A stretch of DNA of 62,968 nt, counting the filler, from Hyphochytrium catenoides (Eukaryota; Protista; Hyphochytriomycota), in NCBI GenBank assembly GCA_900088475.1. It is 9 parts of 9 records of this genome, joined end to end, with 100 filler letters (N's around TTAATTAATTAA, not from the genome) between each part and the next. Parts side by side here need not be neighbours in the genome. Positions count along the whole stretch, not along the records: positions 1 to 28,767 come from FLMG01003536.1; 8 more parts are not named here. One strand, written 5' to 3'. The stretch's first letter is position 1. Each line of letters begins with the position of its first letter. Positions 1,199 to 28,867 of this stretch are shown here, in pieces. The translations under genes and the position numbers were made by a program. The notes below the pieces were generated by a model. That model saw nothing but the letters and a program-made list of their open reading frames with translations. It had not been told where the DNA came from and did not search any database.

Positions 1199-3832
1199 TT
1201 ACCCTTCCATTAACACCTTAAGGGAAGGTAGAGTTGTCACTCGCTGAATAAGGAGATCTTCATGCCGAACAATATGGCTTATGCGGAAATATAAGAAGAA
1301 CCCCACATAGCTGTGAGCAACTCCAGCCACAAAAAAGAAGAGAAACATCGAGGCGTTCACGAAGGTTGGGTCGCTGGAAAGCCTATTCCACTGGGGGCTG
1401 AGGGCGAACAAGAATATGCCTGCGCCCAAAAACATCATAGCGGCGCCACCACAGTACAGTACCCTCTGCAATAATCTGCAGTTGATGGACGAACCTTCAC
1501 TTTCAGGAATTTTTTTCTTAAGAAGCCCTCCCTTGTCCGTTTTATACAGCTGAGCCATTATGGCATAGTATGCATACCCAGTCCCTGTCAGCCAAAAGCC
1601 TGGGAAACTTGACGCCTTCACAGCCTTAAAAAACAGATCAAGGTTTTGTGCGACCATACGCTCCTCGTGCTGTGGAGAAAACTTGTATTTTTGAATCTGC
1701 TGCTTCATGCTGTCAATGGTCAAAGATTTGGTCTTGGATATCGTCCTGTTGTTCCAGTATGCTTGCGAGGTTAATGACTGTATAGTCTTGCTGGTCATCA
1801 CCAGGATATGGAATGCATGATGCTGGGGCTCCAAGAAGATCTGACACAGCAGCTGCCGAGTGTAGATCTCATACCACAGCGTTTTGTACCTTGATCCCCG
1901 ATCTTTCTTATGAATTGGAAGTTTCCCGGACACTATTGCCAGGACTTGTGAGCTAAAATCCATTAGTTTGTCAAACTTGTTCTGAGCGATGTATATTTTC
2001 TTCAAGAGTTCCAGAGAGTCACGTATATCACAATGAGCTGGACTTAAGATGCGAAACTGTGACAGCAAGCACTCCTCGAGCAGGATCTGTGCTCTTTCTA
2101 TGTTGCTAATCTTGTCGTCATTATCATTGTCTGATCTCTCCGGAGTGACACCACTGTGCCACTTTTGCTGCTCAGTAGACTGACCATTGTTGATCAAAGG
2201 AAGTTCTTCCACGGTGCTAACGCGGTCAAGGACGTCCGCCTGGAAAAACAGGGTCCTCTTGATGCTATCGAACCACCCACCAGTCTTCTTTTTGCCAAAC
2301 CGAACATAGTCCGTGTAGTACAGAAGGGCCTGAACAAATTTTGCATAGAGCTGTCGTGGATGGTTTTCATCCTCGAAATAGCCGTCGGACTTCTTACATC
2401 CAAATCTTTTGACAATCCTCTGGACCTCAAGCTTCAGTTCTGCGATCTGTCTACCGTCAAGATTTTCAGATCTAATCATGCACTCGAAATAGAAGAGGGC
2501 TACTTGGAGGGCAACTGGATGGTCCTTCAATTCACTTCGAGCACAGTCTTCCCGCAACTTTTCAAAGCCTTCTTTGGCTTTTTGGTAAGCTCCCATTCTC
2601 ATCAGGGTCCACCAGTATTCAGTCTTTATCCGAATTTGCCATTGCTGCAGAGAGCCGTCTTGGATCATAGCCAAGAAGTCTCCAGCGTCATCATGAGATG
2701 TCGATTCAGCCGCTACCAGAAAGATCTTGCTTGCCACATCAAGGAGTTCTGCCTGAATCATTTTAAAGTGGTGATCTGAGCTGCCAATACTTCCCAGCGC
2801 GCTCAGAAGGAAAGCACCGACGAGTCGCTTAATATACCATGAATTGCCCTCTTTGACGCGCTCCAAAAGGTTGTTTAAAGCTGTGACGTTAGTCTGGAGC
2901 GTGACAAAACTGGCATCGCAGAAAATAGCGTCACGGAACCTGATTTCAGTTCCAAAAAGCTGTTTTCTGGCCCATTCGTATCTGTCATGAGAGCTTTTCT
3001 TTTTCTGTTCCTCATCATCTGACAGGCGCGCACAAAGTTCTTGACCACCGGCTTTCAATACCACCATGAACACGCCATCTTCGTTTAAAGGAAGGCTAAA
3101 CGTGGTAAATTTAAGCTTGTCGAGGGCGGGAGCCTCCTTTAGAAGATAGTAGCCGCGGAGCTGCAGTTGTAGCTCGCAAACATGTCCGGTACCGACGTGG
3201 CGAAGATTGATCTTAACATCCCTGTAGCCACCAGGGATAGGCTCCGTTGAACCGAGAGTGTTCTTCACACGGACCAAAACAAATGAATCTGCAACGACCC
3301 TCTGCGAATCCCGGATGGTAGCTCGTACAATTTCGTTGAATGATACTAGCAGATCCTCAGGTTTCTCGAAGAGTAATGTGGCACGGACGATGTCTATGAC
3401 TTGTGCGAAATCACCTTTGTAGTCGTTCTGTGCCTTTTGGGTTATTCTTGCTCCTTGTTTTAAAGGACCGTAAATGAGGGTACAATCTTTATTCCGCTGC
3501 CTGGACTGCTCCAAGAGAAAGGCGTCGAATGAGACCTTCACTTGACGGGCATCAAGAATCAGAGGATCGGCGGATTGAGTCTTATCGTGATGATAATGGC
3601 GGATCTTCTTCTCGGTAACCCTCATATCACCCAGCATTCCGCTACCATCAATTGCTGCTTTAACGGTCCCATGGTAAAGTGCATCGTAGTTCGTTGCGTC
3701 CGCAATGGTCTTGCTTACAATGTCTAAGGTTGTCTCCAGAAGACTTATGTAGCTGCTGATGTCTTTCTGATCGCCCAACGACGGCGGAAGGGCCTGGGTA
3801 AGGTGTCCGATTGGGACAGTCTTGACAGACAT
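1199..3832 (-). CDS. RelA/SpoT (small alarmone synthetase-like) nucleotidyltransferase domain + TPR-like helical region + C-terminal transmembrane helices, 877 aa, intronless
   Basis: Synthetase motifs occur in the expected order: GPLKQGARITQKAQNDY (Syn1), VIDIVRAT (Syn2), RVKN, GGYRDVKIN (Syn3), HVCELQL (Syn4), then HDRYE. TPR-like segments follow (DHPVALQ, NHPRQLY, LLEECLLSQFRILSPAHCDIRDSLELLKKIY). Two strongly hydrophobic segments lie near the C-terminus (VLYCGGAAMMFLGAGIFLFAL; SMFLFFFVAGVAHSYVGFFLYF). Confidence 0.8.
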   Translation of the reverse strand: MSVKTVPIGHLTQALPPSLGDQKDISSYISLLETTLDIVSKTIADATNYDALYHGTVKAAIDGSGMLGDMRVTEKKIRHYHHDKTQSADPLILDARQVKVSFDAFLLEQSRQRNKDCTLIYGPLKQGARITQKAQNDYKGDFAQVIDIVRATLLFEKPEDLLVSFNEIVRATIRDSQRVVADSFVLVRVKNTLGSTEPIPGGYRDVKINLRHVGTGHVCELQLQLRGYYLLKEAPALDKLKFTTFSLPLNEDGVFMVVLKAGGQELCARLSDDEEQKKKSSHDRYEWARKQLFGTEIRFRDAIFCDASFVTLQTNVTALNNLLERVKEGNSWYIKRLVGAFLLSALGSIGSSDHHFKMIQAELLDVASKIFLVAAESTSHDDAGDFLAMIQDGSLQQWQIRIKTEYWWTLMRMGAYQKAKEGFEKLREDCARSELKDHPVALQVALFYFECMIRSENLDGRQIAELKLEVQRIVKRFGCKKSDGYFEDENHPRQLYAKFVQALLYYTDYVRFGKKKTGGWFDSIKRTLFFQADVLDRVSTVEELPLINNGQSTEQQKWHSGVTPERSDNDNDDKISNIERAQILLEECLLSQFRILSPAHCDIRDSLELLKKIYIAQNKFDKLMDFSSQVLAIVSGKLPIHKKDRGSRYKTLWYEIYTRQLLCQIFLEPQHHAFHILVMTSKTIQSLTSQAYWNNRTISKTKSLTIDSMKQQIQKYKFSPQHEERMVAQNLDLFFKAVKASSFPGFWLTGTGYAYYAIMAQLYKTDKGGLLKKKIPESEGSSINCRLLQRVLYCGGAAMMFLGAGIFLFALSPQWNRLSSDPTFVNASMFLFFFVAGVAHSYVGFFLYFRISHIVRHEDLLIQRVTTLPSLKVLMEG

Positions 3833-4379: not shown

Positions 4380-5010
4380 ATGTAGGTGTGGTATCTCGCT
4401 GATGAAGATTCTGTGTATTTCAAGGGAGTTACGGCATTCTCTTGGTTCAGAGGGGCGTTACAAAGGAGATGGCGTCACAAGCAACGATCAACAGCAGGCC
4501 CCCTATCGGCGTGCGGGGTGGCCCTTGACCTTTTTAGACCGTAAAAAAACGGAAGGCATCGCCGAGGCCATCAGTGAAAAGTGGCATAGAAACCACCAGT
4601 GGAAGTCGCCGAAACCATCGGTAACATGAGGTTAGGGCAGCCTCGTTTACCGGTTGTTGATGTGGGATGAATCGATGCAAACCCAAACGGAATATCTTTA
4701 GAGTGGCCTTTAATTAACTACGGAGGTAACAATTACTTTATTATAAAAGAAAAAATAATTGGTAACCTTAGCAGTAGTTGGGTGCTGCCGATTGTTTCTG
4801 TAGGGCTTCCTAATATCCCTGTCCCTGTCAACTTTCATTTGGGCGGGGCCCAAACTCCAATCCTGCACACTTCAAACCCATTTCTATGGAGAACACGGAA
4901 GACAAGAAGGACGTTATGCTCGTAACTCCTTTGTAACGCCACCAAACCAGAAGGATGCTGTAACTCCCCTTGAAACGCCCCAACCCTCAGCCCTTCGATT
5001 CCACACATAA
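4380..5010. repeat. Diverged inverted repeat pair (core arms ~4421-4474 and ~4921-4972)
   Basis: The reverse complement of 4421-4474 (cgccatctcctttgtaacgcccctctgaaccaagagaatgccgtaactcccttg) aligns with 4921-4972 (cgtaactcctttgtaacgccaccaaaccagaaggatgctgtaactccccttg). Weaker similarity extends outward. Confidence 0.7.
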
Positions 5011-6159
5011 GTCATGACTGCCATGTAACCTCCTTTGCTTGCTCCGCCCCATCCCTAACTAAAAGGAGAGTTCATTTATGATGAACACTACTTGCTTACC
5101 CTGAGGTTGAGGTTGATGGTGATGACATTGTCGGTGATGGTTCACCTCCTCCTCCTTCTTCTCCACTTATTATTATTACAGAGGCCTAGCTTAGGGCATG
5201 ATGACCCAATCCCAGCATCCCTGCCTCCCTTTAGAGCAGGGGCAGTAGCAGACAAGGGGCAGGGCACCCCAAGCGGGCGGTGCCAATGTAACCTCACTGG
5301 AGGCCTCACCACCCATACAGCCATCGATAAAAAAAAAAGAAAATTTTACTACGGACGAAATCAATTATGATGATTGCTGTTCACTGCTGAGGAGAGTGGA
5401 GGAGATCGAGCCGCGCTCTTGAAGGATAGCAAGGGCCTTAGCGACATCCTCTAGCGTGCCAATGAGAGTGCCATCATCAAGGTACGACAGGTGGAGGTCC
5501 AAGGAAGGTACAGATGTGGCAATTTCAGGATTACGGGGTCGCATGGAGAGCGGGCAACAATCTTGCAGTGGAACCTGTCACGTAAGCCCGCTGAGATGCG
5601 TACCGCATCCCTCTCCAAAACAACTAGATGGAGAAAGGAAGCGCCGAATGGGAATGCCCAGCGGATGGTGTTGCCAGGAAGCCCAAGGCTTCTCTCAACT
5701 AGCACTCGGCTTAGAGAGGCCGACTGGCCGAGGACGCCTGCGGTAAGAACAGAAGGGAGAGCGAGAAGGTAAGCTGCCAAGCGGTCTTTGCTTAATTTCA
5801 TCACTAATCAAAGGAGAAGTAAGAGAAGAAGAAGAAGAAGACTTGAAGAACAAAAGAACAAGAAAGAGAAGAAGAAGAAGAGACAACAAGAGCTACAACG
5901 TCTTGATCTCTTCGTCAACTCCATCTTTTCCACCTTCATTATCAGAGAAGAAGATTCATAGTTGACGTTTTAGGAGACTTTTCGCCTTAGCTACAACTAC
6001 TCATAGAAGGAGGAGGAGAAGAAGAAGAAAACGGAAGAAGAAAGGAAGAAGAAGACAAGAAAAGGAGACCACCGTCACTGCAGAGCGGTTCTTATTCAAC
6101 CTTCCCGCTCCACACTCCTTATTTCAAAAGGAACCTTTTATCTCAAGGAAGAATAATGC

Positions 6160-6600
6160 TCTACTCGCTGCTACTACTACTACTACTTGGAAGGAGGAGG
6201 AGGAGAAGAATGAGGAGGAGAAGAATGGAAAAAAGAGGAAGTAGAATAGGAACGAAGAAGAAAAAAACAAGAGCTACATAGCCTTTATCGCTAAATAAAC
6301 CGACTATAGCCGCTCCACACTCGTTATCATAATAAGGAAGAATCATTGTTGACTTCTTCTGTAGAACAAGAGGAGAAGGAGGAGGAAGATGAAGCGCCGA
6401 TGACAGTGTCATAATCATGTTCAATTAGGCAAGCAACCGAAGGGTCCAGCTGCTGAAGAGGAACATGCTACAGAATCCGAAGCGCATTACCTTCATGAAT
6501 AGCCAAAGAGACTGCGGCACGGAGGCGCAAAGCCCTAGCCAGGCGAGACCAAGGAGTAATAATATGCCTAGTAGAAGCATCAAGAAATGATCGATCACTC
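6160..6600 (-). mobile_element. Degenerate 3' end of a non-LTR retrotransposon (RLE/CRE-like), family A
   Basis: The minus strand of 6422-6520 reads AAVSLAIHEGNALRIL*HVPLQQLDPSVACLIE. This matches the copies at 11880 and 12490 and resembles the end of CRE-type RLE ORFs (RLSvAlqrGNA..I). A CTT-rich tail follows. Confidence 0.6.
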
Positions 6601-6944
6601 CTTCTCAAACCGTGTTTGATATTGTCTTATATTTCACTAGTAGACTATTGTTTTATATATGCATGATAATCGCTACGCTGAAACCAATAACTACTAAGAG
6701 GAAGAAGCAAGAGAGAAAGGAATAAGAGGAAGAAAGAAGAAGAGTGAGGATGAAGAAGGGAAAGAGAAAGAAATAAGAGGAAGAAGAAGAGAAAAGAAAA
6801 GCCTATAAAGCCTTGAGCTCTTCCTCATCAGCTCGATCTGCTCCATGCTCATCATCAATAAAGGAAGAGTCATAGTTGATTTCCTCAGTAATGATGGGCG
6901 CCGCCCATGTTAAGATTGAGCCATAACCTTGCTACAGAGCTGGT

Positions 6945-8399
6945 TTACGGTTGAGTTGGCATTACCTTAGTCACAGCTTTAGCTGTTTCGATATTGAAAT
7001 TCTCCCGCCGCCGTGAGACGGATGTCGGGGTTAGTTGTTTCGCAAAATGTGCACAGATTTTGCACTCTCTATGTGAAAGTTCACTGCTTTGCGAGGAGGG
7101 AAAGTGTTTCAGTGGTGCGCTCTCTCGCTGGAGAAGCTTGATCAGGAGGACACGCTGATTGGGGTTCTCACGGTTGCGGAACACGTAGTAGACCCAAATG
7201 TATCTGAATATAAGGACAAAGGCTGCCAGGTAACGTGCCGTAGCGTCGAAGGCACTACTTCGCCGGTAGTAGGCATCCCCAACAATCTCAGCGTCGCATA
7301 AAGAGCAGGACTCACGTCTTGACAGACCTAGACAGTTGTCTGCGACGCAAGCTTGGCGGTCCAAACCGTAGAGATAGCTCGAAATGACGACGAGTACTCC
7401 CTGTATGATGAGGAACAAGAAGCAGCCAACGAAGTGTATATCGAATATAGTCATATAAGGAACCTTTGGCAAGGCGTCCTGGGAGACAAACTTGAACGCC
7501 ACTTCTGTCAGGAACACGTTGACTAGCACGCTTAGGCGGTCGGAAAGGTCACTCAGGTCGATGAAAAAGGTTGCCAAACTCAAAACGTCTGCGACAGCTA
7601 GAAGTCCCCCAAGGTTGATGACTACACTCTTCCACTCTCGCCTTAGGCCAATGTGAACATAATACATATCCAGGTCGTCATCCTTCTCTTGCCCTATCAC
7701 TTCTGGCGCTCGTTCTCCAGCTACTTCGGGAAAATCTTGCGTGAGAATACCCGTTTCCTTCCATCGATGGGGCACGGGGTGGCCTATGATGTGATCATTG
7801 ACATCCCATTCTGGGAGTAAGTCAGCATCAGTGGACAGAGCGTGACCTTTCCTATCACGATATGTGCCCATCGGCAGCTGACAAAACTCTACGGTAGGCC
7901 GATCCGTTGATCCGAAAACCGCAGCCACGCGAACTCTCAGCCGTATCGTTAGCACTTGGACATCAAAGGGGTAACCATAGACCAAATACGGCTGCGTTAA
8001 AGTCAAGCGACGTCTAATGGTTGCTGTACACCGCGTTTGCTCTCCATTTTTACCTGTCTTCACTTTCATGTTCTCCGCAATCATTGCTATAACAGATGCC
8101 TCCGTTTCGTGGCCACTAGTGCTCAAGTCATTGAGAACCTCAACAAATGGGATGAAGTGGTCCCGCCATTGTTCTTCCGTTGATGGAAATCCCTCATCCT
8201 TCCTATTGACCACCGAGTCGTCTATCCAATCGAGCATTAGTAGAAAATCATCGCAATTGAAGGTTTGGTTGACGACATCAACGTTGGAAATGCAGGACAC
8301 CTTGACGGTGACCGTAACCTTTGGCGCGGTGATCTTCCCTTTCCGGCCACCGTCGCGATCTTTGTAGTATTCAACATATCGTCTACCCAGCAGACTCAT
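6945..8399 (-). CDS. Cys-less (Pro-loop) pentameric ligand-gated ion channel subunit, 484 aa, apparently intronless
   Basis: Beta1-2 VTVKVSCISNVDVVNQTFNCDDFLLMLDWID, Pro-loop YPFDVQVLTI, LPEWDV, pre-M1 Arg (GLRR), M1, M2 SDRLSVLVNVFLTEVAFKF, M2-M3 LPKVPYMTIFD, M3 and M4. Confidence 0.92.
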   Translation of the reverse strand: MSLLGRRYVEYYKDRDGGRKGKITAPKVTVTVKVSCISNVDVVNQTFNCDDFLLMLDWIDDSVVNRKDEGFPSTEEQWRDHFIPFVEVLNDLSTSGHETEASVIAMIAENMKVKTGKNGEQTRCTATIRRRLTLTQPYLVYGYPFDVQVLTIRLRVRVAAVFGSTDRPTVEFCQLPMGTYRDRKGHALSTDADLLPEWDVNDHIIGHPVPHRWKETGILTQDFPEVAGERAPEVIGQEKDDDLDMYYVHIGLRREWKSVVINLGGLLAVADVLSLATFFIDLSDLSDRLSVLVNVFLTEVAFKFVSQDALPKVPYMTIFDIHFVGCFLFLIIQGVLVVISSYLYGLDRQACVADNCLGLSRRESCSLCDAEIVGDAYYRRSSAFDATARYLAAFVLIFRYIWVYYVFRNRENPNQRVLLIKLLQRESAPLKHFPSSQSSELSHRECKICAHFAKQLTPTSVSRRRENFNIETAKAVTKVMPTQP

Positions 8400-10493
8400 C
8401 GCTAATCCACCTTGACCGGCGAATATTGTCGCTGAACTCTGGTAAATTTGGTGGCCAGCTCTGCGATTATCACAAAAGGAGGTCCCGATGAAGCAGAGTG
8501 AGAAAATAGCTATTTGATGAGTAGCAAGAGGATGCGCTTAGAGCAGAGGTCTACTCGTCGAACCAAGCCACTTTGCTTCACGGACGCTTAGGTTTTTGAA
8601 ATCGTTCTCGCGCGTGTTATAGATGTCGTGCGATGTTAAGGTGGCCGCTCTTCGTGTAGAAGGACGCGGTACAGGGAGGATGGGCGGAAGGACAAAAGGA
8701 GCCTAGCACTATCGAAAGGTTGGTGGTTCCAAACGTTATAACCTCGATTTACTTTCCCTCGAACGGTAGAATGGCCCGCACAGCAAGAGGAGAATGGACC
8801 CTGCCTTCGCCCGTTTTTCCGTCCGCAAACTATCGATGGAAGAGGATAAAGTAAAAAATACTTGAGGTGTGATTCTTCTGCTTTCTCTTTTATAAAAAAA
8901 GGGGGTGGGGGGGAGGTGGGCCGTTAATACTCTACTGTGTCAACCTGGGGAGTTACGAACTGACATTGTCTATTTTTTTTTTCGATGTAGGGAATAGCCT
9001 TTTATCAATTTTGCTACTACTCAAAAGAAGAGGGGAATAAGGACTATGAAGTAAAATGGGGAAGAAGATGATGGAGATGAAAGAAAGGAAAATGGGAAGA
9101 GGGCGAAGAGACAGAAAAGCAAAACGCCGTGCTCTCGTTCTTTCGTCCTCAGCTCGATCTCCTCCATGCTCATCATCAGTGAAAGAATTCAAATTTTTGG
9201 TTGGTAGTTCTAATGTTATTAGCCTTAGAACCAATTACATAGATTTTTCATGGCTGTATTGCGTCCTCTGGGGAGCCTTGCGCCTTGTCTGCCACTGCCC
9301 CTGCTCTAAAGGAGGCAGTTATTTTCTGGGGGTGGGTATGTGCGCTGTGGCGGCCGTTGTTGTGTCCCTCGGTTGGTGCCTCAGCTGTTATAGAACCAGC
9401 GGTGGGTCGGTCAGCAGGAAGAGGGCGCTCTTGTTAGCTCTTGTTGTTGCTGCTCTTTGGTGTGGTCAAATTTGTCTCTGAAAGACGTTCGTCCGTTATG
9501 TGGTGGAGTGTCCCCCTTGTTGCTGCTGGCGGTTGTTGTCTTCTGCCACGTTGGTGACCTATATAATTCTGTGTCTCTCCTCTCCCTGTCACTCCGGCTC
9601 TTGTCAGTCTCAGCACCAGCCGCTCCATAACTCCTATCATAAACCTGTTATTAGTAATTCAATACATGTGCTTTTTATGTAATTTTTTATATGTAATCTA
9701 TAAATAATACAAACCAAGAAAACCGGTAAATATAGGGCTCTTTTAGCCAACAAGATAGAAAGCTGACCAAGATTCGCCATCTTTTCTAGTAGGAACTAGT
9801 GTGTAGACTGCCGTGTGCTACATTTATCTCCAAGGAGGTTCTTGCAGTTTGTGGTCTAACTTGCAGGTACAACAAGGCTGCGTTATAAGGACGAACTGAG
9901 GCGAACAATGAGCCAATGCTTGTTCCTCTGCTAAAATAATACAAAAGGATGAGATCGGGGTCGAAACCTCTGAAGCATGGAGATGCTGACCGTCGAAGCC
10001 TCTCAATAGCATGGAGCTCCTCCCAAAATGTGATCTCTAATTGTCGTTGCAAAGTACTTGCTCATGTGTGTTTATGAACAAGTACTTCGGTCGTAGGTTG
10101 TGAATATCGGGTCTGTGGGATGTTTGTGAACAGCTTTGCATGTGATTCTCTTTCCAGACGGACTCTCTCATCAGTCGCGTAGCTGAATGACTATCGGCCA
10201 ACAAAGAATGATGATATCAAGAGACAATCAGGTCTGATAGGCCCAGTAGCGGCATACGACTTACTTCTCCACGAACTGCCCCGCTACCTTTCTCATAAAC
10301 CGATAACGAACCTCCTATACAAGCTGGACTGACCAACGCGCTTCCTCGGCGTTAACAAAGCCGACTCACTTTCCTTTCTGCTTCTGAAGCGTGAGGACTC
10401 ATTGCTGATGTCCGCCGACCCTGTGTCCTCCTCAGCATCACTGATCAAAGCTGAACCCATAATCAGGCTTCGCCCGATATATATATATATATA

Positions 10494-11837
10494 ATGGCTA
10501 CACCGTCATCACTTGTAAGCGAAGCCCGCAACCGCGTCCTCGCTTGGCCAGAGATGCTCTCTCGCCAATGGGAGGATGTTGTTAACCGTGATAAGGACGG
10601 CCCATCACCTGTCCTACAAGAGCGAGAGCAAGCAACATCGACATTCTCCATTATGCAGTTCAATCAGCTCTCGGACAGTCTCAGTGGGAAGAGCCCCACC
10701 AAGGGGAACTTCCTCGTGCCAGATACCGTACTTGACTGGGATAACCGAAAATGGAGGTGAGAAAACCCACCAATTGTTCACCTTTAGAGCCGATAGTCCT
10801 TACTACTTTACACTTGCTGCCCTAGGTGTCTCGAGGAAATATTGAGGTGGAACCCAGACATCATCTGCCTTCAAGAAGTTGATCATTTCGCCGACTGGTA
10901 TTGTCCACAGTTGGAAGCTGTGGGTTACGGTGGCATTTTTCTGCCCAAACCAACTTCCCCGGCACTAGAATACGGCGGCCGAGTGGAGGGTGTGGCATTG
11001 TTCTATCGCAGAGAAGTAGCGTGTAACCTCCAGTGCGAAAAGATCAGATTTTTTTGTCCCAGTGACCCTGAAGCTGACGGCTCTAGCGTTGAGACTTTGG
11101 CACCGGACGATATAGTCCCGCAGAGCCAAGTCGCTCTAATAGCGACTCTTGAAATTTTAGGTAATGAGAACTCCTTTGCTCAAGATGTCCTTGCATATTA
11201 ACTTTTTACTACGCACCAGGTCGGAAGACTATCGTCGCTGTGACTCATCTCAAGGCAGCAAAATCTCTGGCAGGAGAGAAAATACGGGTCCAGCAGTTGT
11301 CCTATCTCCTCAAGAAGATCGAAGCGCTTAGAGATGGGGAGCATATTCCAGTAATAATTGCGGGAGACTTCAACGCATGCCCAGTCGATACGGACTACCC
11401 AGCTCTTGCTTATCGATTTATGAGAAATTCGAATAGGTAAAACTGGACAATGTAGCCATCATCTCGTTCACCCTGGCATCTGACTGTTCATTTACCATCC
11501 TTGTATGAAGTATGTGCCTAGAAAGTGCGTATACCATAGGAGGTTCAAGTGAACCAGCTTATACTAGTTGGAAGAGGCGTTCTGGCAAAGGGGAAGTAAA
11601 GAATGTCTTGGACTATATCTGGTTAGTAGCATACACATACTCCTCATCCTTTATTATGGACGCCACCCTCACCCACTTTTAAACCCAACGATAAACAGGA
11701 TATCCAGTGACCGACTGACGATAAAAAGACGTCTTAAAGTACCGCAAGAAGATTCAGTTGCCCCTTCACTCCTACCCTGTCAGGAGTATCCCTCAGATCA
11801 CGTGTCACTCGTAATTGAGTGTAGTTTCATCAACTAG
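10494..11837 (+). CDS. NOCT: Nocturnin-like EEP/CCR4-family phosphatase, 5 exons (introns 10757-10825, 11161-11219, 11437-11510, 11622-11698)
   Basis: Splicing at GT-AG sites joins the ORF pieces in frame: MQFNQLSDSL...WDNRKWRCLEEILRWNPDIICLQEVDHF...THLKA...GDFNA...YTSWKRR...LDYIW...YPSDH, the nocturnin motif set. Confidence 0.9.
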
Positions 11838-11879
11838 GGGGTGGGGAGGTCAAGGGTTTATTGTTTAATAAAAAACAGA

Positions 11880-12300
11880 ATCTGAAGCTTGAGTCTGTTC
11901 AGCAGTTGGACCCCGCTCTAGCTTGCATGATTGAGCGCGATGATGATGATGGTCTCCTATCATTATTGCGGAAGAGTTCAACTATGATTCTTCTTCCTTT
12001 TTTCCGACATTGATGGCGAGGGTGGCGGAGGAGAACGCGTTGTAGAGTACAGGGCTTTGTAGCTCTCGTCTCTTCTTCTTTTCTCTTCTTCTTCTACTCC
12101 GTCTTCTTCTTCTTCCTCTTCTTCTTCTTTTTCTCGTTCTTAGCTTCATCTTTTACTTCTTCTTTTACGTCGGGTGAATGATGGAGCTGCTTCTTCCTCT
12201 TTTTCCCTTTTCTGGCCTACTAGTACTTTTCGCTCTCGTTCTTCTTGTTCGTCATAGTATAATTTTCATATCTTCTTCTCTAAAGTAGTCTACTAGTCAC
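11880..12300 (+). mobile_element. Degenerate non-LTR 3' end, family A copy
   Basis: LKLESVQQLDPALACMIERDDDD followed by aactatgattcttcttcc and a CTT-rich tail. Similar to 12530-12830. Confidence 0.6.
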
Positions 12301-14095: not shown

Positions 14096-16644
14096 TTATT
14101 TGCACTGAGACGGGACATCAAACGCATCGTTGTAAACGCGAGGTTTGGCAGAAGCACCCAGTCCGCGCTTGGCGAAGCCTTTCCAGATCTCACATTGGTT
14201 AGCACCATCGTTGTTGGCCTGGTCAGCCTGTAAGATCGCGTCTCTGGCTTGTACGAGGGTTGGATTGCAAGGCTGAAGCTTCATGCCGTCCATGACGAGC
14301 TGCATCATCACCGTGTTGCCCTTGCCACTGGCGGCATCGTCCTTGTATCGCGGCGTGAAGCCAAGCTTATCAATGAGGTTCCAGTACACTTCCCAAAGCA
14401 TCACAGCCCAGACTTCACCGATCTTATGGACTTCCTTGTACTCCTTAAGGTAGGAATACGTGTGCGGGTTCTTGTTCATGTCCGTCGTATAGACGTAGCG
14501 GCGAATGCCGTTAGGGTTGCCAAAGACGTAGACACCCGTGGGGAAGTCAGAGTTCCTGTTGTTGGACGTTTTGGTTCGCAGAGCTTGTCCATAGAAGTCG
14601 CCCCACCCTTCGCCCATGCCGCCAGACTCAAGGCTGTTGAGACAGTTCGAGTTGTCAGCACCGCCGGTCAATCGTGTGGAGAGGCCGTGAGTAAACTCAT
14701 GAGTGATAATGTCGTTAGAGATCGCGCCATCGCGAAGGGCGCCGGGCTTTGCTACATTCCCTGTTAAGTGGTAGAAAGAAGAGCTATTAGGACAGATAGA
14801 CCAGATCCTATAGACCATGAGAACCAAAAGGAGCCAGCAACGGCCGTTAGAAGAAGGAGGCAGGGGAGGAATGTCGTTCAACCATCAAGGTAAGAAGAAG
14901 AGAGACAGCAATCGTCGTTGGGATCAAAGATGACCTAGCATCAAGAACGCTGATGCTAACACACGCTACGGAGAGGACAGTAAGAGGAGATGACGACAAG
15001 GCCTTCGTGAGAGGACGAGAGAATGGAACAATGCTCAAGGGCAACAACGACAGCTTTAGAAGAAGTGGCGGTAGTCAGTAGGGAAACTCACAAAGATACA
15101 TCCTCATTCTTGGGCTTCGGCCATCAGGCGGCGTGGCAAAGTTGGCGTTGTTCATCCCTGAGGAGTCCTGGCACGTCGCGACCAAGGGGTCATTGCTTCT
15201 TCCTCCGGCCTTGTTGACTTTCTGAAAGTTCCCGGCAGCGTCTGTGAAGCCGTAGGCGTAGTAGATATCGTGGATGGAGTTGGCAACGTAGAACATGTTG
15301 GTGACAGCAAAGTCGTGATAGTCCTTAGGATTCATGTCCTCACTGAAAGTGAACTCAAAGTCAAAGTTAGTTGCCGTGGCACCCGTGCCGCCGGCGGTAG
15401 CAACGACGTTGTTTCCCTTGGTAGAGCTCACGGGACCTGAGCCTGCGTCATGCCACCCGCGGGAAGAGTACTTCAGATCTTGCGGGTCCGTCAGGACAGT
15501 GGGCTTGCCATCAGACAAGTCCATGAACCCAATCGGGAGGACCTTGTACTTCACGCCTGTCAACCCTGGTTGGAGTCTTCGTCGAAGAGTGGTTCCCGTG
15601 TTAGTAGCCCCCGTCAGGTTTGCCGTTGATTCCTTCTTCCATGCTTGGTCATTCAGCTGCTTTGTAGAGAGAAATGATGGCTGTTCACCGTTGGCAACAG
15701 CAGCAGGGAGCTCAAGCTCGAAAGTACCCGTCTGGACACCGTCTTCGGTAGAAAATAGAGGTACATCAGAGTTGCGGCTCCAGTCAGAGACAGCAACAGT
15801 TCTTCCATCTTGGGCACTGACGAAGACATTGAGCCTATCGCGCAGAAGTTCAGTAGCAACAAGAGGATTCAACAATGCGTTAGTCTGATGGATGAAGAGG
15901 TTTCAGGGCCGGCGCAGAAGATACTTACCAGTTGTTAACCATCTCGATCTCCAGACTCCAGACAAGCTCCAGAGCTCCCTCAGATGTCTGATAGTACTTT
16001 AGATTAGCATTCACTTCCTGACCAAGCGCGAAGCTGGCGCCGGTGATGGTCCACTGCACGGGAACATCATTCACAACCTTCGACCCTGGAGTCGCTTTGA
16101 GCTCAGGCTTAGAAACGGGTAGATTGGAAGACCTTGCGAAGCTCTCCAGAGCGGAAACAGCAGAGATCTTCGGGCGCCCACCAGCAGTTTGAATTGTTGC
16201 GTGATGTGCTGCCACAGTGCTGGCGTAGGTAAGGACCTTATTGTTCTTGTCTACGGTCACCTTCACGCCGCCATTCTCCACATCGAGGCCATCCTTAGTC
16301 TGGACCATGTACATATGATAGAGGCCGTTGTGCTCATCGCGAAATTCCCTAAGCACTTGTACCTCAGGCGTTGCGGATTCGGTAGTGGAGCTCTCAGATA
16401 GTTTTTGCTTGGCAAAGTTAAGTGCGGTCTCGGCCTGGGTGGCACCTGTTCCAGCAATATCAAGACCAGTAGTAAAGTCAGCATGGGGCTGCCAGTAGGA
16501 AGGGGCAGTGACAGTCACTTTGCTCGTCGACGGGTCCACAGCTAATGATGAAGACGGGAATGTAGCGCCCAGCATCATCAAAGCTCCAATGATGCTAACG
16601 GCGCATCTCCGCCGCTGCTGTCGGGATGAAGACTTACGAGCCAT
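14096..16644 (-). CDS. Secreted fungalysin (M36) zinc metalloprotease, 3 exons (introns 15835-15928, 14761-15091)
   Basis: A signal-like hydrophobic stretch (AVSIIGALMMLGATF) and an FTP-type propeptide (HNGLYHMYMVQTKDGLDVENG) precede TKGNNV, YGFTDAAGNFQ, NNANFATPPDG, HEFTHG (HExxH), GGMGEGWGD, EVHKIGEVW, KLQPCNP and FAKRGLG. Splices give NNW|LNVFV and MYLW|NVAK in frame. Confidence 0.95.
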
Positions 16645-17329
16645 TGCAGAGAGAATGAGAGTTCGGGCGGTTGTCGCCGAGTGGACTTGGAAGTCACTGT
16701 TGAAAATGAAGAATGACAAGCTACTGCCAGGCCTTCATCCCAATGAAGCACCAGTCGGCCTTCAAATCTGATCTCTCCTTCAATAGGGAACTGAAGACGG
16801 ACAGCAAAGAAGTTAGGCCAAGAGACCTTTTCATTCTATTTTCCGGTTCACTCTATACGGCTGCATGGGACCATGAATTTTGAAGGCGATAGCCCAGCAG
16901 CGAGAAAATAGAAGACGGCGCTCGGAATAACTCTCTGAAGATAGATGATGATGGTGATGAGAACAAGGCATGGAGAACGAACTGAGAATGAGCGCATAGC
17001 TTCGCTGGATAACTCCAGGACAAGACAATGGCGACATCTCCGAGAAGGTGGTCAAACAGAGCCTTGATAAAGAAACGAAGAGAGGAGAAGGGAAGGGGGA
17101 GCAAGTTCGCGTCATGGCGCCTTCCCTAGATCTATGCCGTCTTTGTTTATCGTCTGCACAAAGGAACAGGGAAGAAGATGTGAACCTTCGGTCATATCTT
17201 CACTATTATTAGCAACAGAGTAGGAGAAGGAGTTTGGAAGACTTCAGCGGTAGGATAGGACGGCTTTGGTCATACCACCAATGTAGAAGGAAGGACGTAA
17301 AGAAGAAAGAATGGGAAGGGAAAGAGCGT

Positions 17330-20999: not shown

Positions 21000-21673
21000 T
21001 CACATGTTGTAGCTACTATCAGGGTTAAGATAGTGGATGATCTTCTCCCAGCATTCTTGAAGCAAACCCTTCTTGCTCCTCTCTCCCCCCTTCGACTGTC
21101 TCAACTCCACGAGGAGGAGGAGGAGAAAGATAACCTGGTTGAACTGTCTACTATATAACGAGGCTCTCTCTTTCCTCCATGGCTTCTCGGCCTTCAACAG
21201 GAGAGAGAGACACTCTCTCTTTCTCTCCGCCTGTGCTATGTCTCTCGCTGTCTCTCCCCGGTAGTTAACATCATCATGAATCCGTGCTCCTGCCCTTAGT
21301 AAACGCCTCAGTATCTTAGTGTTTCCTCTGTAGGCCGCCCACATCAGCGGAGTCGCTAATAATATATGAGGAGGAAAGGATGTCGAAGAAGAAGAGACGG
21401 ACGAAGAGAGAAGAGAAGAACAGCGAGTGGAGGGCGCGAGAGAGAGGTTTGGCGCCGCTCCTGCCTTCAGAAGCAAAGATGTTATCTCCTCCGAGTTCTT
21501 CTCTGCAGCGATGATAAGGGGAGAGATAGAGTTAAAAGAGTAAGACACGTTCACGTCTGCGCCGGCCTCGAGAAGGAGAGAGATGAAAGAGGGACTTCTC
21601 TCTCTCTCTATCGCTTCCAATAGCGCTGTCCATCCACCTTCTTCTTCTGCTCTATCATCGATCACATTGGTCC
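21000..21673 (-). pseudogene. Ankyrin-repeat gene, duplicated 3' exon only (no homologue of the copy-2 first exon)
   Basis: GWTALLEA, LLLEAGADVN, SPLIIAA, TPLMWAAYRGNTKILRRLLRAGA, GETARDIA. Near-identical to 26684-27297; similarity stops inside the preceding intron. Confidence 0.7.
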
Positions 21674-22889
21674 CTACTAAGAGTGAGAAGAAGACGTTAG
21701 GGATGTGCGAGAGCAATAAGGAGACAACAATAAGGAGACAGCAACGAGAGACATCATGGCCAGCGATAGAGCCCAGGAATAAGGTTATATTAGACTGCAT
21801 CTCGACGATGTTGGAGCCGAAGGTGCGCAGGATATTAAGGCTGTTCGTTATCCCAAAGAACTCTTTAAATTTCGCACTGGTATTGGTGGAGAGGTAGCTC
21901 GCGGACCCATCTTCTATCAGCTGTACAAGAATGCTATCTCCAGAGTCAGAAGAATCGGCATATAGAAGAGAGAAGGATGATTTGATGTGATGGTTCTTTA
22001 GTATATTAAGGCCTACTACGGACTAACTCGTTTCTTCTCTCTGCCTAATATAATAACAACCCACCACCATAAGTAATTTGCAGCCGCCATCCAAATAAAG
22101 CGTCTCTATCCTCGCTCTCTCTTGCTTCGCGCTCACGCTCTTGCTCTATCTCTCCCATCCGCAACCCTCGCCACTGCTCACAGGTCAAGAAGATGACCAG
22201 GAGGAGCGGAGCGGAGTAGTGATGATGATGATGATGGTGACACGCACTCTTTGAGCGAGGATAAAGAATATAAAATAACTACAACCATCGAGCTTTTGGA
22301 CGGTGATGACCTCGCTTTGCAAGAAGCGTATGACTTTTACATCTCTTTCTTCTGTGGTCATCAATCCTCTTGCCTTTTTATCCTGTCCAATTCAACTCTT
22401 TGTCTGAACCTTCAGTACTCCTCCGTGACAGAGTCTATAACTCATCCGTTCACTGCCGCCTTATTATTGAACACAATCAAAGTGGACAACAGCAGTAGTA
22501 TAAACCTGTTTATCGGGTACACTCCTTGTTTCTTCACGCTAGAAAATGTGAATTTGTGTACATGCAGCTCTGCAACAAGCTACTGTAGCAATATAAGGCC
22601 CTGTTGTTGTGGTGCTTGTCAGAAGAAGAACGGCATTGTTTGGCCAGCAGATTTTCAAGTCAAAGTGCCGCGGGTTATGAGAAGCTTTGACGGAATAAAT
22701 ATATAGTAGTAGACTGGCTGGTTGGCAGATTGTAGGAGCAAGTCTAAAGGTGACGTCTGAGTTTGTCGCAAGGAACAAACTCATTGTTATTCCTAGCTTT
22801 CAATAATAAGAAGGGGCAGCAGTAGTCTTTCTTCTGCTGGTGCTGTGGACATACATTCGTTTCGTAGTGACAACATCATCTTCTCACCG

Positions 22890-23960
22890 ATGTTCAAGAA
22901 GCGATCTTCTAAAGAAGCACCTGCTGCTAGCGCACCTCCGCTGGTGGAGGAGGAGATGATGACTGCTGTTGTAACCGCTCTCCCAGCAGCAGCAGCAGGA
23001 GCAGATGGAGTATCATCTTCAGCCGCAATGGCTGGCCGATTGCCAGCGACAATGGCTGGAGGCTTGAGCCATACGATGCAGCCTCAAATAGCTGCAGGAG
23101 TTGAAGGCGGGGTGACAGCAGCGCACGCTTTTCCAGTTTCGGCTAATGGTGTCCCAACGCCGGCGCCGGTGCGTGCTGCTGTCCTAGAAGCACACCCAGC
23201 CACGTCGAGTGACAAGGCCCCTAGCAGTCGTACGCCTACTACTGGAGCTGTTTTATATGACTGCAAGTGCATGTTTCTGAAGGATTCCGACAAAATCATT
23301 TTGGTTGACTTTCCTTCAATGCTGGTGGCCTTGGTTAAGAGGGCAATCGAGGATGGTTGGAGACAAGGGATACAAAGAGAACGGACTTGGAACGAAAGCT
23401 ATGCAACGGCGCACGAGTTTAAGCTCTTCGGCTACCCCTGGCATGGCTCCGGAGAGGACGCCATCCATTCGCGGTTGCTCTTGCTAAGCATTTTGAAAAA
23501 GATGGCGCAGAGTGGATGGAAGCTTCTTGCGCCCGTTGACGCCTCAAAGTCTCAAGGAAGTAAGGACGCGTTGTTCTTCGAGTATATTGGTGCCAGCGTC
23601 CCCGGTGTGGACATGTTCGCGATATCTATGAACCGCTCAGACCGCTTACGTGTCATCGGTGCGCCGAGTTGCTCCCCTGTCAGTAATACCATACGGGACG
23701 CAATAAAGAAGCATTATCCACCTGGTATACAGAGGTCGGGCCAGTACTATAATGTACCAGAGTTCAAGCTTGCAGGATATCCTTGGAGGGGAACCTTTGC
23801 TGACGTCTTGTATGGCCGCCGGGCGCTAGCTGGCATAATGCAGGAACTCTCTCATCTTGGCTATAAGCTCTACACGTCTGCAGACATCTCCACTGGAACT
23901 GAGGGTGAAGATGTAGACAGCCTCTTTTTCCGAAGAATTGACGAAGGGTTCACTTGGTAA
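22890..23960 (+). CDS. Uncharacterised protein: low-complexity Ala/Pro N-terminus plus two tandem ~110 aa repeats, intronless
   Basis: Internal repeat: SDKIILVDFP...AIEDGWRQGIQ...EFKLFGYPW...GWKLLAPVDAS...DALFFE versus SDRLRVIGAP...AIKKHYPPGIQ...EFKLAGYPW...GYKLYTSADIS...DSLFFR. First ATG is at 22890. Confidence 0.85.
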   Translation: MFKKRSSKEAPAASAPPLVEEEMMTAVVTALPAAAAGADGVSSSAAMAGRLPATMAGGLSHTMQPQIAAGVEGGVTAAHAFPVSANGVPTPAPVRAAVLEAHPATSSDKAPSSRTPTTGAVLYDCKCMFLKDSDKIILVDFPSMLVALVKRAIEDGWRQGIQRERTWNESYATAHEFKLFGYPWHGSGEDAIHSRLLLLSILKKMAQSGWKLLAPVDASKSQGSKDALFFEYIGASVPGVDMFAISMNRSDRLRVIGAPSCSPVSNTIRDAIKKHYPPGIQRSGQYYNVPEFKLAGYPWRGTFADVLYGRRALAGIMQELSHLGYKLYTSADISTGTEGEDVDSLFFRRIDEGFTW

Positions 23961-24704: not shown

Positions 24705-26430
24705 CGGACATTGTCTATGGTTTGCCTGAGCCTAGGAGCATAAGCCATAGCTAATGCTACAGCGCCTCATCATCAACAAATGTAGCAGCCTTTCAATCAT
24801 AGTTCGTTAGTAGGAGCAGCGCTACTCAATCTGGCAGTCAGAGAGGTCATTCATCCAGCGGTTGAGGAACAATTGACAGGTTGATTATGCTTGAAACGGA
24901 TGGATATAAAGGAGGAGGAGGATATCGACCAGAACTTCCCACAAGTCCTTCTCATCAGCCAAAGAAGAGAGAAGATCATAGAAGATCTCTGTAGACTGGA
25001 AAGTGAATAAACAGCTGGTCTGTCCTATCAATATGGCGCGCCGCCTGCCTTTGTCTCTAAGATATAATCGCGTCTCTCCACATCCTTTCTCTTATACCAG
25101 GAGTACGGTCGACTCCTCCGTCTTCAACCCTTTCCCAGCTCTTCTTCTCCCCTTCTTGCTCCGTGAACATTGAACTTTTCTCTAACTAATAGCTCTTCGA
25201 GATGTTGTTCCTTCTTTCATTATCTACATTTGGACGAGAGAAAGAAGAAAGAAGCAAGAAGAAAGAAAGAACAAGAGACAAGAAGAACTGCGAAGCTGTT
25301 ATAAAAGTTAATAACTCTCTCCTCCTCTCTTCCATCATCAGTTATTATCAGAAGACAAGGAAGGATCATAGTCCTTCTGTTCCACAGCATTAACAATAGG
25401 AAAAGGATGACAAAGGGAAGAAGGAAAAGGCGTCATTAAGAAGGTCAATCATCACACTCGACCAGCCAACAACTGGAGAGAAGAAATGCGCTTCAAAGTT
25501 TGAACTGATTATCTTCCTGAATGGCCAAGGAGACTCAGGTGGAATGAAGGCCTGAAGCCATCATGAGGCGATACCAAAGATACCGAGAAGCATCAAGCGA
25601 AGAACGAAATCATTGAAACTTCGCAAGCCGCCGCTCCACACAGTCAACCAAAAGGAGATGATGCAGAGCCCCTCATTTTTTAAGGAATCCTACGTAGTGG
25701 GATAAGCTGACAGCCTGCGTACAGCCTTATAGCGAGCCTCATACTTCGTCACTTTGTCAGACAAGAGACCCTCATAGTAGCCAACATGGACGGCTACATC
25801 GGGAAGAGTTCTTCTGAAGTGCAGCGAGGATCCGTGTGCTGCTGAGAACAAAGTCCTTCATGAGGGAGATCGTCCATAAGAAAAGCAGGGACAATCTGTG
25901 AACGACCCATGCTGAGCTGCTTCGCTGTTGCCACAAGCACTCAGGAGTATTGATGGTGCTTTCTGCCTACCTCTGACATGAAAAACTCTTGGCGGGGCTA
26001 TCGACACGGCTCATTCAACCCAGAGAGACTATGGATTAGAGCCATTCAAAACAACTGGTGTTAGGGCACGATCAACTTCCTCTTCTTTCTTCCTCTTCTT
26101 TCTTGACAGTCCGTCTACAGAGGACTGCCTCCACACCTCTCTCAGGAGACATTGCAACAATGCGAAGATGATGCTTTCCAGGCGACTCGCAACCTCCGAG
26201 GGATGGCCAGAGTGCTCCTCATGATGCCCTTGTCCGCTTTCTGTCCATGGAAGATAGTTCGCTATTTTCCCTCGGCTTTTCATTTCCCTCTTTTGTTACG
26301 CCTGCTGGGGAGAGCTTGGCTGACTAGCAGTTGGGTTGGAAGCTCTTGGTCGGTGCAGTGCAGAGAGCAGGAGGAGATAATGTAGCTTATCGGCGATAAC
26401 ATTCCACTGTGAAGAAGGTGCCAGAGAGAG
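24705..26430 (-). mobile_element. Degenerate LINE-type reverse transcriptase pseudogene, copy 2
   Basis: Colinear homologue of 18610-20750. It retains VRGRQKAPS, AFLMDDL (YxDD-like catalytic motif, ~25865-25890) and TDQLFIHFPVYRDL. Confidence 0.55.
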
Positions 26431-26659
26431 GGAGGTAGGGGCAGGGGGGAAAGTAGAGAGCAGAAAGAGAAAGGGTATTCGCTCTTGTCTCTGTAGGTTT
26501 TCGTGACTTGGAGGAGACCAAGAGGGAGAAATCAGGAGGGAAGGAAGAAGACCACAGAGGAAGACCAAGGAGAGAGAGCGAAAGAGAGAGAAAGAGAAAA
26601 AGAGAGAGAGAGAGAGAGGAGNNNNNNNNNNNNNNNNNNNNNNNNNNNNNNNNNNNNNN

Positions 26660-28228
26660 NNNNNNNNNNNNNNNNNNNNNNNGATAGTGGATGATCTTCT
26701 CCCAGCATTCTTGAGGCAAACCCTTGCTCTCTCCGCCCTTCGACTGTCTCAACTCTACGACGAGGAGGAGGAAGATAACCTGGTTGAACTGTCTACTATA
26801 TAACGAGGCTCTCTCTTTCCTCCATGGCTTCTCGGCCTCTAACAGGAGAGAGAGACACTCTCTCTTTCTCTCCGCCAGTGCTATGTCTCTCGCTGTCTCT
26901 CCCCTGTAGTTAACGTCATGGATCCGTGCTCCTGCCCTTAGTAAACGCCTCAGTATCTTAGTGTTCCCTCTATAGGCTGCCCACATCAGCGGAGTCGCTA
27001 ATATATGAGGAGGAAAGGATGTCGAAGAGGAAGAGACGGACGAAGAGAGAGAAGAACAGCGAGTGGAGGGAGAGAGAGAGAGGTTTGGCGCCGCTCCTGC
27101 CTTCAGAAGCNNNNNNNNNNNNNNNNNNNNNNNNNNNNNNNNNNNNNNNNNNNNNNNNNNNNNNNNNNNNNNNNNNNNNNNNNNCACGTCTGCGCCAGCC
27201 TCGAGAAGGAGAGAGATGAAAGAGGGACTTCTCTCTCTCTCTATCGCTTCCAATAGCGCTGTCCATCCGTCTTCTGCTCTATGGTTCACCTTAGTCCCTA
27301 AGAGAGACGTTAGGGATGTGCGGAGCATTAAGGAGACAGCAAAAAGAGACATAGGCAGCGATGGTGGAGAATCTACCTGCGTAGATGGACGGAGGTGGAG
27401 AGAATAGAAGAGGGAAAGGGGGAACGGAGAAAGAGAGAAAGCTGGACATCGAGGGGGTCCTAAAAATAGATGAAGAGAGAGAGAGAGAGAGACTCCGGGA
27501 AGGGAAGAGAAGAGAGAAATGGAGCGAACTAGATCGAGAGAAGAAGGATGAAGAAGCAAATGGGTGGGCGAGGGAAGGCAGGAGAGATAGAGAGAAAGTA
27601 ACCGAGAAAGGAAGAGAAAAATGTAGAGGGAGTAAGAGAGGGAGAAGGAGAGACGGAAGGATGGGCGAGTCGGTGAGAGAGAGGGGGAGAGAAGGGAGAA
27701 AAGAGAGAAAAGCAAGAATGACGGCAGTGTGTGTATGGTGTGCGTGTGTGTCTCATAGAGAGAGGGGAGACAGAGAGACACAGAGAGGGAAAGAGAGAGA
27801 GAGAAAGAGAGAAACACAGAGAGAGAGAGAGCAAGCACACCTGACATGCGGAGAAGCTCCTTCGCAAGCTCCTCTTTCCCATCTCTAATAGCGTACATTA
27901 GCGCCGACCAGCCGCCTAACAGGACCTTCACGTCCAACTGACTCCTTACCATCGGCCTCAGAACCTTAACATCCGACTGAGAAATCGCCTGAATGATAAG
28001 CTTTCTTAGTGCTGAAGGGCTCTGTTGATAGCCGATGACGCTGGTAGAGCTCTTCAGATCGAGAGAAGAGAGAAGATAGTGAAACCATGAGCCTAGAGAG
28101 AGGAGAAGAAGAGAGACACGGGTCTCGGCGGTAGAAGAGGGAGAAGAGGAGACTTTGTTGTCTATGTTGTCTCCTCTCTCGCTCCTGGACCGCGAGGTCG
28201 CTGCTGCCCACCGCAGCCACTGACTCAT
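26660..28228 (-). CDS. Ankyrin-repeat protein, 2 exons (intron 27298-27840); stop codon probably falls in an N gap
   Basis: Exon 1 ends GGWSALMYAIRDGKEELAKELLRMS and splices in frame to GTKVNHRAEDGWTALLEA...TPLMWAAYRG...GETARDIA. The end coordinate is estimated from copy 1. Confidence 0.85.
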
Positions 28229-28391
28229 TCTGCAGATTCTGAAGCTCTGGACAAGCTCTTGAAGGTTGGGACAGCCATGAAGCTGTTACGATGGAGATAG
28301 CGGAATGTCGCCGTGGCACTGGGAGAGCGAATAGAGCATAAAGCACCGTACAGTTAGTGATGTTGAAGAGGAGCGGGAGAGAGAAAGAGAG

Positions 28392-28428
<37 letters not shown>

Positions 28429-28767
28429 GTGTGAGCGAGAGAAAGCGAGAGAGAAAGAGAGAGAGAGAGAGCAGTGAGGAAGAGAGTCAAGATGGCATAC
28501 TGAAGCTGCCTCTGCTGCTTGAATAGCTGGAGAAAGAACGAAGATACAGAGCCAGGGAGACAGAAGAGAGAGGCGAGGGTTGGCTGACTGAGTGAAGAGA
28601 TTGATGAATAGGAGAGAGGCAGAGTTAATAGTGATGGAGATACTCAGAGAGGAACGAAAGCAGACTATTCGAGCGCGAGCGACGCAGAGACAGAGGGTAA
28701 GAAAGAGGAGGAGAGAGTGAGTATTTGAGAGAGAGAGGGAAAAGAGGGAGAGAGAAAGAGAGAAAGA

Positions 28768-28867
28768 NNNNNNNNNNNNNNNNNNNNNNNNNNNNNNNNN
28801 NNNNNNNNNNNTTAATTAATTAANNNNNNNNNNNNNNNNNNNNNNNNNNNNNNNNNNNNNNNNNNNN
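28768..28867. other. Artificial contig spacer N44-TTAATTAATTAA-N44 (other cores at 36264, 38715, 41288, 42993, 54382, 59256, 61244)
   Basis: The same six-frame-stop 12-mer sits inside N runs eight times, and genes are truncated at these points. Confidence 0.97.

Follow-up and report, generated by a model that had tools for sequence, protein, structure and literature searches.

The gene described here lies on the minus strand at positions 6945-8399 of a 62,968-nucleotide stretch of DNA (the window) from Hyphochytrium catenoides (assembly GCA_900088475.1). It encodes 484 amino acids plus a stop, with the protein start MSLLGRRYVEYYKDRDGGRKGK, and its product is a genuine Cys-less (Pro-loop) subunit of the pLGICs (ion channels that are pentameric and ligand-gated), a member of a large clade that is found mostly in marine protists. 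To our knowledge, every pLGIC studied so far, from GLIC and ELIC to the nicotinic, GABA-A and glycine receptors, senses its ligand outside the cell. For this protein, the reading that best fits its sequence and that of its relatives is a flipped one, and we consider it probable that it forms a cation-selective pentameric channel with its ligand-binding domain (LBD) in the cytosol. A flipped channel with a cytosolic LBD had been proposed in a preliminary description of the same DNA; the proposal holds as the best-supported reading, but on other grounds than the charge clues first offered for it.

Taken alone, the protein matched only the Pfam family Neur_chan_memb, at E=0.007 and 17.1 bits, which is under the gathering cut-off of 28.1 that several homologs do exceed, and a word-based homology search with it returned no match. 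We attribute the Pfam miss to the divergence of the single sequence; profile and fold tests settled the assignment. An exhaustive HMMER search of 1.8 billion representatives gave 1207 relatives at E<=1e-3, the best of them with 37% identity, and a 65-sequence alignment built from these relatives (A1) served as the source of a family profile. Against the sequences of the PDB the A1 profile matched ELIC at 3.4e-45 and also GABA-A beta3, GlyR and GluCl; 350 PDB sequences were found at E<=0.01, with pLGICs accounting for 60 of 60 among the matches listed. The AlphaFold2 monomer predicted with the A1 alignment has an N-terminal helix, a beta-sandwich and four transmembrane (TM) helices, M1-M4, with a predicted local distance difference test score (pLDDT) of 80.1 and a predicted template modelling score of 0.74, compared to a pLDDT of 37 when the single sequence was used. 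With this model as the Foldseek query, the top 50 matches were all GlyR, GluCl or GABA-A chains (E ~1e-17, target template modelling score ~0.7).

The residues that define the superfamily are retained. The LBD (residues 27-257, 7629..8321, delimited by conservation, profile, AlphaFold2 and Foldseek) is a beta-sandwich that includes W58 and P84 and has a long loop C (residues 216-238) of low model confidence. P144 and R254 are invariant in all 65 A1 sequences, and W58, P84, F145, D146, R288 (0'), L297 (9'), P311 and Y315 are conserved in at least 90% of them. Among these are the hallmarks Y143-P144-F145-D146 (7962..7973), which is the Pro-loop between beta6 and beta7, the 9' Leu, the M2-M3 Pro and the pre-M1 R254, the pre-M1 Arg being in pLGICs the salt-bridge partner of the beta6-beta7 Pro/Asp loop. 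The Cys-loop of animal receptors consists of two Cys 13 residues apart that flank this same loop. Here no Cys is found near YPFD, the LBD having its Cys at 36, 49, 124 and 173. The assignment to the Cys-less Pro-loop pLGICs follows from the profile, the fold, the conserved residues and this lack of Cys flanking YPFD.

The TM part begins with M1 (residues 258-280, 7560..7628; conservation and AlphaFold2), just after R254. The aligned M1-M2 loop, DLSDLSDR (residues 281-288, 7536..7559), provides Asp at -1' and Arg at 0', and the M2 pore helix (residues 289-310, 7470..7535; alignment and AlphaFold2) has T294 at 6', L297 at 9' and D308 at 20'. It is followed by the M2-M3 loop PKVPY (residues 311-315, 7455..7469; alignment), in which P311 and Y315 are nearly invariant, by M3 (residues 316-344, 7368..7454; AlphaFold2), by an M3-M4 loop of 46 amino acids (residues 345-390, 7230..7367), by the hydrophobic core of M4 (residues 391-407, 7179..7229, within an AlphaFold2 helix spanning 379-411) and by a basic C-tail (residues 408-484, 6948..7178). 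Under the textbook selectivity rules for pLGICs, the combination of -1' Asp, 0' Arg, 9' Leu and 20' Asp is of the cation type and suggests a cation-selective pore. Four homologs with exactly five units per chain, described below, lend indirect support to a predicted pentameric assembly.

The reading frame appears complete as a single-exon coding sequence, going by the listing of open reading frames (ORFs) and the coverage of the family profile: the one open frame matches positions 21-417 of the A1 hidden Markov model (HMM). Read-through of an intron into the C-tail was considered and rejected, as the tail aligns with the tails of the homologs and the match to the family HMM ends no more than 3 residues short of the stop. 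The genome (61 Mb, 4759 contigs) is eukaryotic with introns, and a whole-genome scan with Pfam PF02932 found no canonical pLGIC in it. In the tree, the gene sits on a long branch, and support for its position is weak.

ELIC and GLIC share with the protein described here the Cys-less state and a short M3-M4 loop, and they carry a signal peptide, place their LBD in the periplasm and terminate a few residues past M4. ELIC, the best profile match, has LPRLPY in the M2-M3 region where our protein has LPKVPY. The H. catenoides protein differs from ELIC and GLIC in lacking a signal peptide, in its N-terminal helix, which is of the eukaryotic type, and in its basic tail of 77 amino acids. The closest structures are GlyR, GluCl and GABA-A, which have in common with it the N-terminal alpha-helix, the beta-sandwich and M1-M4. 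Animal receptors are further characterized by a signal peptide, a disulphide in the Cys-loop, an M1-M2 loop of the anion type, an M3-M4 loop that is long, basic and cytosolic, and a C-terminus that is short and extracellular; none of these five features is present here, and the pore has the cation-type signature.

Cys-less Pro-loop pLGICs have been catalogued in protists (Jaiteh, Taly and Henin 2016, PMC4795631), and the gene belongs to this group of unicellular eukaryotes, with which it shares F/YPFD without flanking Cys, the pre-M1 Arg, the four-helix TM domain and the protist origin. A term search of that paper found neither the term 'N-terminal' nor any passage on signal peptides or on how the channels are oriented in the membrane. 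An N-terminus without a signal, an M3-M4 loop that is short and acidic, a C-tail that is long and basic and the inversion that these would imply are absent from its description. Nor did the full-text literature searched, which included a survey of diatom channels and had most subscription journals outside its coverage, mention any pLGIC that is signal-less or inverted.

What is informative on orientation in this protein family is the absence of a signal peptide, together with the M3-M4 loop and the C-tail. As had been noted in the preliminary description, the N-terminus is charged and lacks a signal peptide: residues 1-26 (8322..8399), delimited by sequence, alignment and the AlphaFold2 model, contain 7 K/R and 3 D/E and no hydrophobic h-region. 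They carry instead the conserved N-terminal motif of the family, S-x-L/I-G-x-K/R-F/Y..., with a modelled helix at residues 6-15. The same holds for the clade as a whole. Homologs with an initial Met and coverage of beta1 number 92, and in 88 of them no signal-peptide-like or TM-like segment precedes the LBD. Their N-extensions (median 60 amino acids, up to 342) consist of 14% K/R, 13% D/E and 0.9% Cys, and homologs with longer N-termini still show no signal peptide. The hydrophobicity heuristic behind these calls detected all three classical signal peptides on which it was checked, those of the homologs P0071 and P0101 and that of a fungalysin encoded in the window, and the latter also indicates that the organism uses ordinary signal peptides.

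A gene-calling artefact does not account for the missing signal peptide, since homologs whose starts are bounded by in-frame stops, counted at eight loci, lack it as well. On the contigs L006-L010, which carry P0009 and P0011 and which we take to be metatranscriptomic going by their sample records, an in-frame stop lies upstream of the first Met and no signal peptide is found. In-frame upstream stops with no gain of a hydrophobic segment were also seen on L003-5, L012, L014 and L015. P0003 begins at the same conserved motif as our protein and has a stop 3 codons upstream, and P0013, P0001 and the 2451-residue P0006 likewise have upstream stops. P0001 (on L014) has only ~120 nucleotides between it and a divergently transcribed neighbor. 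The frame of P0016 is open for ~48 codons upstream, with an earlier in-frame Met that adds 12 residues and no signal peptide. The dinoflagellate spliced leader, which would have marked complete 5' ends, was not found on the homolog contigs. The clade is almost wholly without signal peptides, and their absence is the norm of the clade and not a local loss.

A long folded domain with no preceding signal stays in the cytosol during insertion at the endoplasmic reticulum (ER), and the first TM segment then inserts with its N-terminal side in. With a folded domain of ~255 residues and no signal sequence ahead of it, M1 would act as an N-in signal anchor, and the entire subunit would be inserted upside-down relative to the pLGICs of animals and bacteria. 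This would leave the LBD on the cytosolic side, together with the M2-M3 loop and the C-tail, and the M1-M2 and M3-M4 loops on the exoplasmic side, lumenal or extracellular. As the whole subunit would be flipped, the interface between the LBD and the TM domain would remain unchanged. Such subunits could assemble into a homopentamer gated by a cytosolic ligand, for example an ion or a metabolite, and conduct cations across the plasma membrane or the membrane of an internal store, with the basic tail as a regulatory or trafficking element. The features that would place the protein in the canonical topology were looked for and not found in it: it has no signal peptide, no basic M3-M4 loop and no short C-terminus.

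Charges next to the membrane were among the clues in the preliminary description. The features it listed are present: LRREWK before M1 (residues 251-256), the acidic DLSDLSD-R between M1 and M2, the basic PKVPY between M2 and M3, and FRNR after M4 followed by the long basic tail (77 amino acids, 14 K/R versus 6 D/E). The charges before M1, between M1 and M2 and between M2 and M3, however, do not serve as orientation clues. The family as a whole conserves the pre-M1 Arg, the D..DR loop and the LPKVPY Lys, and for this reason they were dropped from the orientation evidence; a pre-M1 Arg, an acidic -1'/basic 0' loop and an M2-M3 Lys also occur in canonical outward-facing pLGICs. We tested the flanks of M4 alone as well, which avoids the conserved gating residues. 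Over all 15-residue flanks in 103 homologs with M4, K+R amount to 6.2 on the LBD side versus 3.0 on the opposite side, and the LBD side is higher in 88 of the 103 (Wilcoxon 3e-16). At M4 alone, the flank after the helix has 3.1 K+R and the flank before it 1.4, the former being higher in 69 homologs and lower in 8 (p=5e-12).

Loops and tails point in the same direction. In the 103 homologs, the M3-M4 loop has a median length of 17 amino acids and is net acidic in 78 and net basic in 13. The C-tail after M4 has a median of 65 amino acids, and its charge runs the other way, with 82 tails net basic and 11 net acidic. Three of the signal-bearing relatives have an M4, and their tails measure 0, 7 and 19 amino acids versus a median of 63.5 elsewhere; two of the three sit in a separate, well-supported clade; the contrast with canonical pLGICs is drawn from the four signal-bearing relatives and textbook knowledge only. 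A subclade with long M3-M4 loops, which groups with our protein at weak support (86), shows the loop pattern C...W-x-T-G...N-x-S/T...C...ADR, with Cys just after M3 and just before M4. An N-x-S/T sequon is found in 16 of its 24 loops compared to 8.4 in composition-matched shuffles (P=0.001), while the LBDs of the same proteins have sequons at chance level (21 observed, 17.2 expected). We read the Cys pair and the sequon kept in these loops as marks of an exoplasmic position.

Some further details of loops and tails were recorded in individual members. P0064, with no signal peptide and a C-tail of 4 amino acids, has a Ser/Thr-rich M3-M4 loop of 59 amino acids with six N-x-S/T sequons, which looks like a heavily glycosylated extracellular stalk. 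A tail motif, D/E-L-S/T-H/Q-L/M, recurs in the long-loop subclade, and our protein has ELSH as its version; the short-loop subclade (P0001, 7, 8, 11) has YRPY near the C-terminus, replaced by VRPY in P0009. Juxtamembrane Cys clusters or CxxC repeats are present in the tails of P0004 and P0016, and our protein has C-K-I-C. These Cys motifs may be palmitoylation or metal sites. The tails are variable apart from such short motifs, which make the tail a likely regulatory or trafficking element.

Four homologs, P0006, P0012, P0029 and P0048 (2078-2697 amino acids), contain exactly five tandem pLGIC units each, every unit consisting of an LBD and M1-M4 in ~350 amino acids and all five lying in one ORF. 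P0006 is encoded at 72-7427 of L015, a transcript-like contig of 7.7 kb with a single ORF and an in-frame stop 9 codons upstream. P0012 comes from a multi-intron gene model of 42.7 kb (L016, 2001-44693) in GCA_905221605.1, which we take to be a Symbiodinium assembly. More than 850 residues precede the first M1 in the five-unit homologs, without a TM segment or a signal peptide, and this is a further argument for a cytosolic LBD. The N-terminal regions of P0006 (1-668), P0048 (1-700) and P0029 (1-769) hold three copies of a ~200-residue repeat, again without TM segment or signal peptide, with the motifs SFLE..G-V/I-DTS.F/YG, LLAEKK.P.DG and SF/YPGLP.VY.TH. The repeats resemble NUDIX domains below threshold (E 0.008 and 0.011), and no diagnostic cytosolic domain fused to the long homologs was found above threshold, the only matches being these sub-threshold NUDIX ones (E ~0.01). 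The repeats may form a cytosolic sensor domain. Natural single-chain pentameric pLGICs were not reported in the full-text literature that we searched, with the coverage given above.

Several points weigh against the flipped orientation and moderate our confidence in it. The homologs are related to one another, and the counts and p-values above do not represent independent events. The signal-peptide calls rest on the hydrophobicity heuristic and not on SignalP or DeepTMHMM, and many of the homologs are metagenome gene calls in which a first exon could be missing. For the gene itself, an upstream exon with a signal peptide may exist, as the frame stays open over 46 codons ahead of the ATG, and the sequencing runs that contain the locus are of the DNA type only. 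Its own M3-M4 loop has no sequon and is nearly neutral (6 K/R versus 7 D/E). The four loop Cys pointed out in the preliminary description are there, at 351, 356, 365 and 368 (CVADNC...CSLC), but the disulphide-bonded external loop derived from them is no more than a possibility for this gene: the spacing Cx4C...Cx2C is ambiguous and would equally fit a cytosolic metal site. As the gene sits on a long branch with weak placement, features of the long-loop subclade are carried over to it by inference.

The most likely of the alternatives is the canonical topology, in which an unrecognized signal-peptide exon or an unconventional export route places the LBD on the extracellular or lumenal side and the basic C-tail is extracellular. 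The frame is indeed open upstream of 8399, as had been observed before: 46 in-frame codons (8400..8537) without ATG, GTG or TTG precede the start codon, up to an in-frame stop at 8538-8540 (open frame of 530 amino acids), and an AG lies 2 nucleotides before the ATG. We read this segment as 5' leader; the 3' portion of an intron is the less likely option. The genome does have introns, as seen from the profile match of the fungalysin, which is broken by ~340 nucleotides, and the Cx4C...Cx2C loop would suit a metal site in the cytosol. Nevertheless, a search of window positions 5001-12000 with the A1 family HMM gave no significant further exon, the complete, stop-bounded N-termini of homologs are also without a signal peptide, and a hydrophobic segment ahead of the LBD is missing from 88 of 92 homologs. 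Charge bias and loop sequons speak for the flipped orientation instead, and a downstream reverse signal anchor does not translocate long folded N-terminal domains. We regard the canonical topology as unlikely.

Another possibility is an organellar channel, in which the N-extensions serve as targeting peptides for post-translational import of the protein into a mitochondrial or plastid membrane, so that the rules of the secretory pathway do not apply. Many homologs do have N-extensions of 35-340 amino acids rich in K, R, S and T, and the atlas neighbors include algal clusters, Chlorophyta and Bacillariophyta. Our protein and P0003, however, have essentially no extension, with the conserved motif starting at residue 2; the extensions contain ~13% D/E, unlike presequences; and the conserved sequons of the M3-M4 loops indicate the ER route. 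Targeting to the complex plastids of diatoms and dinoflagellates itself relies first on a signal peptide for the ER, which is missing here. Together, this leaves the organellar channel quite improbable. Least probable is a decaying, non-functional copy that lost its signal-peptide exon and drifts with meaningless termini: although the branch is long (identity of 37% or less to anything in the database searched), the genome's sole paralog lies in two frames with no detectable N-terminal exon and only runs of the DNA type contain the locus, all 484 codons are intact, every invariant or nearly invariant residue of the family is kept, the AlphaFold2 model is confident across the core and the absence of a signal peptide is normal for the clade.

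The flipped orientation might extend to this whole clade of eukaryotic pLGICs, a wider claim to which we would give about an even chance on the basis of the sequence data. All its members would then be upside-down, with a cytosolic LBD, a glycosylated, disulphide-closed external M3-M4 loop and a regulatory cytosolic C-tail, acting as cation channels gated by intracellular ligands and including dinoflagellate-type five-unit fusions behind NUDIX-like sensor repeats. An inverted pLGIC would resemble CNG/HCN channels, IP3R/RyR and TRPM2 (with its NUDT9-H domain) in coupling a cytosolic LBD to a cation pore, but by analogy only, as there is no homology and it would differ from them in fold and in its pentameric stoichiometry. 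The weak NUDIX-like repeats at the N-terminus of the five-unit homologs recall TRPM2 in the same analogical sense. If this is true, the gating machinery of pLGICs would be workable in either membrane orientation, and a new class of intracellular-ligand-gated cation channels would enter the signalling of diatoms, green algae, dinoflagellates and other protists. Inventories of protist pLGICs, in which they are now treated as surface chemoreceptors, would need another interpretation. The family would also provide material for structural work, with five-unit homologs that naturally fix the order and stoichiometry of the subunits.

The only other pLGIC in the genome is a paralog on contig C3009 (~28226-29277, minus strand; L002, and L011 6227-7278). 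It is split between two overlapping frames by an intron or a frameshift. It carries FPFD and LPKVPY; its M3-M4 loop is short and acidic, and its tail is basic and 32 amino acids long. An upstream exon for beta1 and the N-terminus was searched for and not found, and the paralog may for this reason be a pseudogene or a gene with small exons.

Among the neighbors in the window, the fungalysin (M36) metalloprotease at 14096-16719 on the minus strand consists of three ORF pieces that cover the FTP propeptide and the N- and C-terminal halves of M36. Its N-terminus is the classical signal peptide mentioned above (MARKSS...IIGALMMLGA...SLA), and the break of ~340 nucleotides in its Pfam match implies at least one intron. 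Short ORFs at ~10842-11840 on the plus strand, divergent from the pLGIC gene, look by eye like one endonuclease/exonuclease/phosphatase gene (CCR4/nocturnin-like) with small introns, and one of the pieces has the motif DIICLQEVDHF. Two ORFs without a Pfam match encode 877 amino acids (1199-3832, minus strand) and 371 amino acids (22845-23960, plus strand). Ankyrin repeats are encoded by two ORFs on the minus strand, of 266 amino acids at 21000-21800 and of 613 amino acids at 26387-28228.

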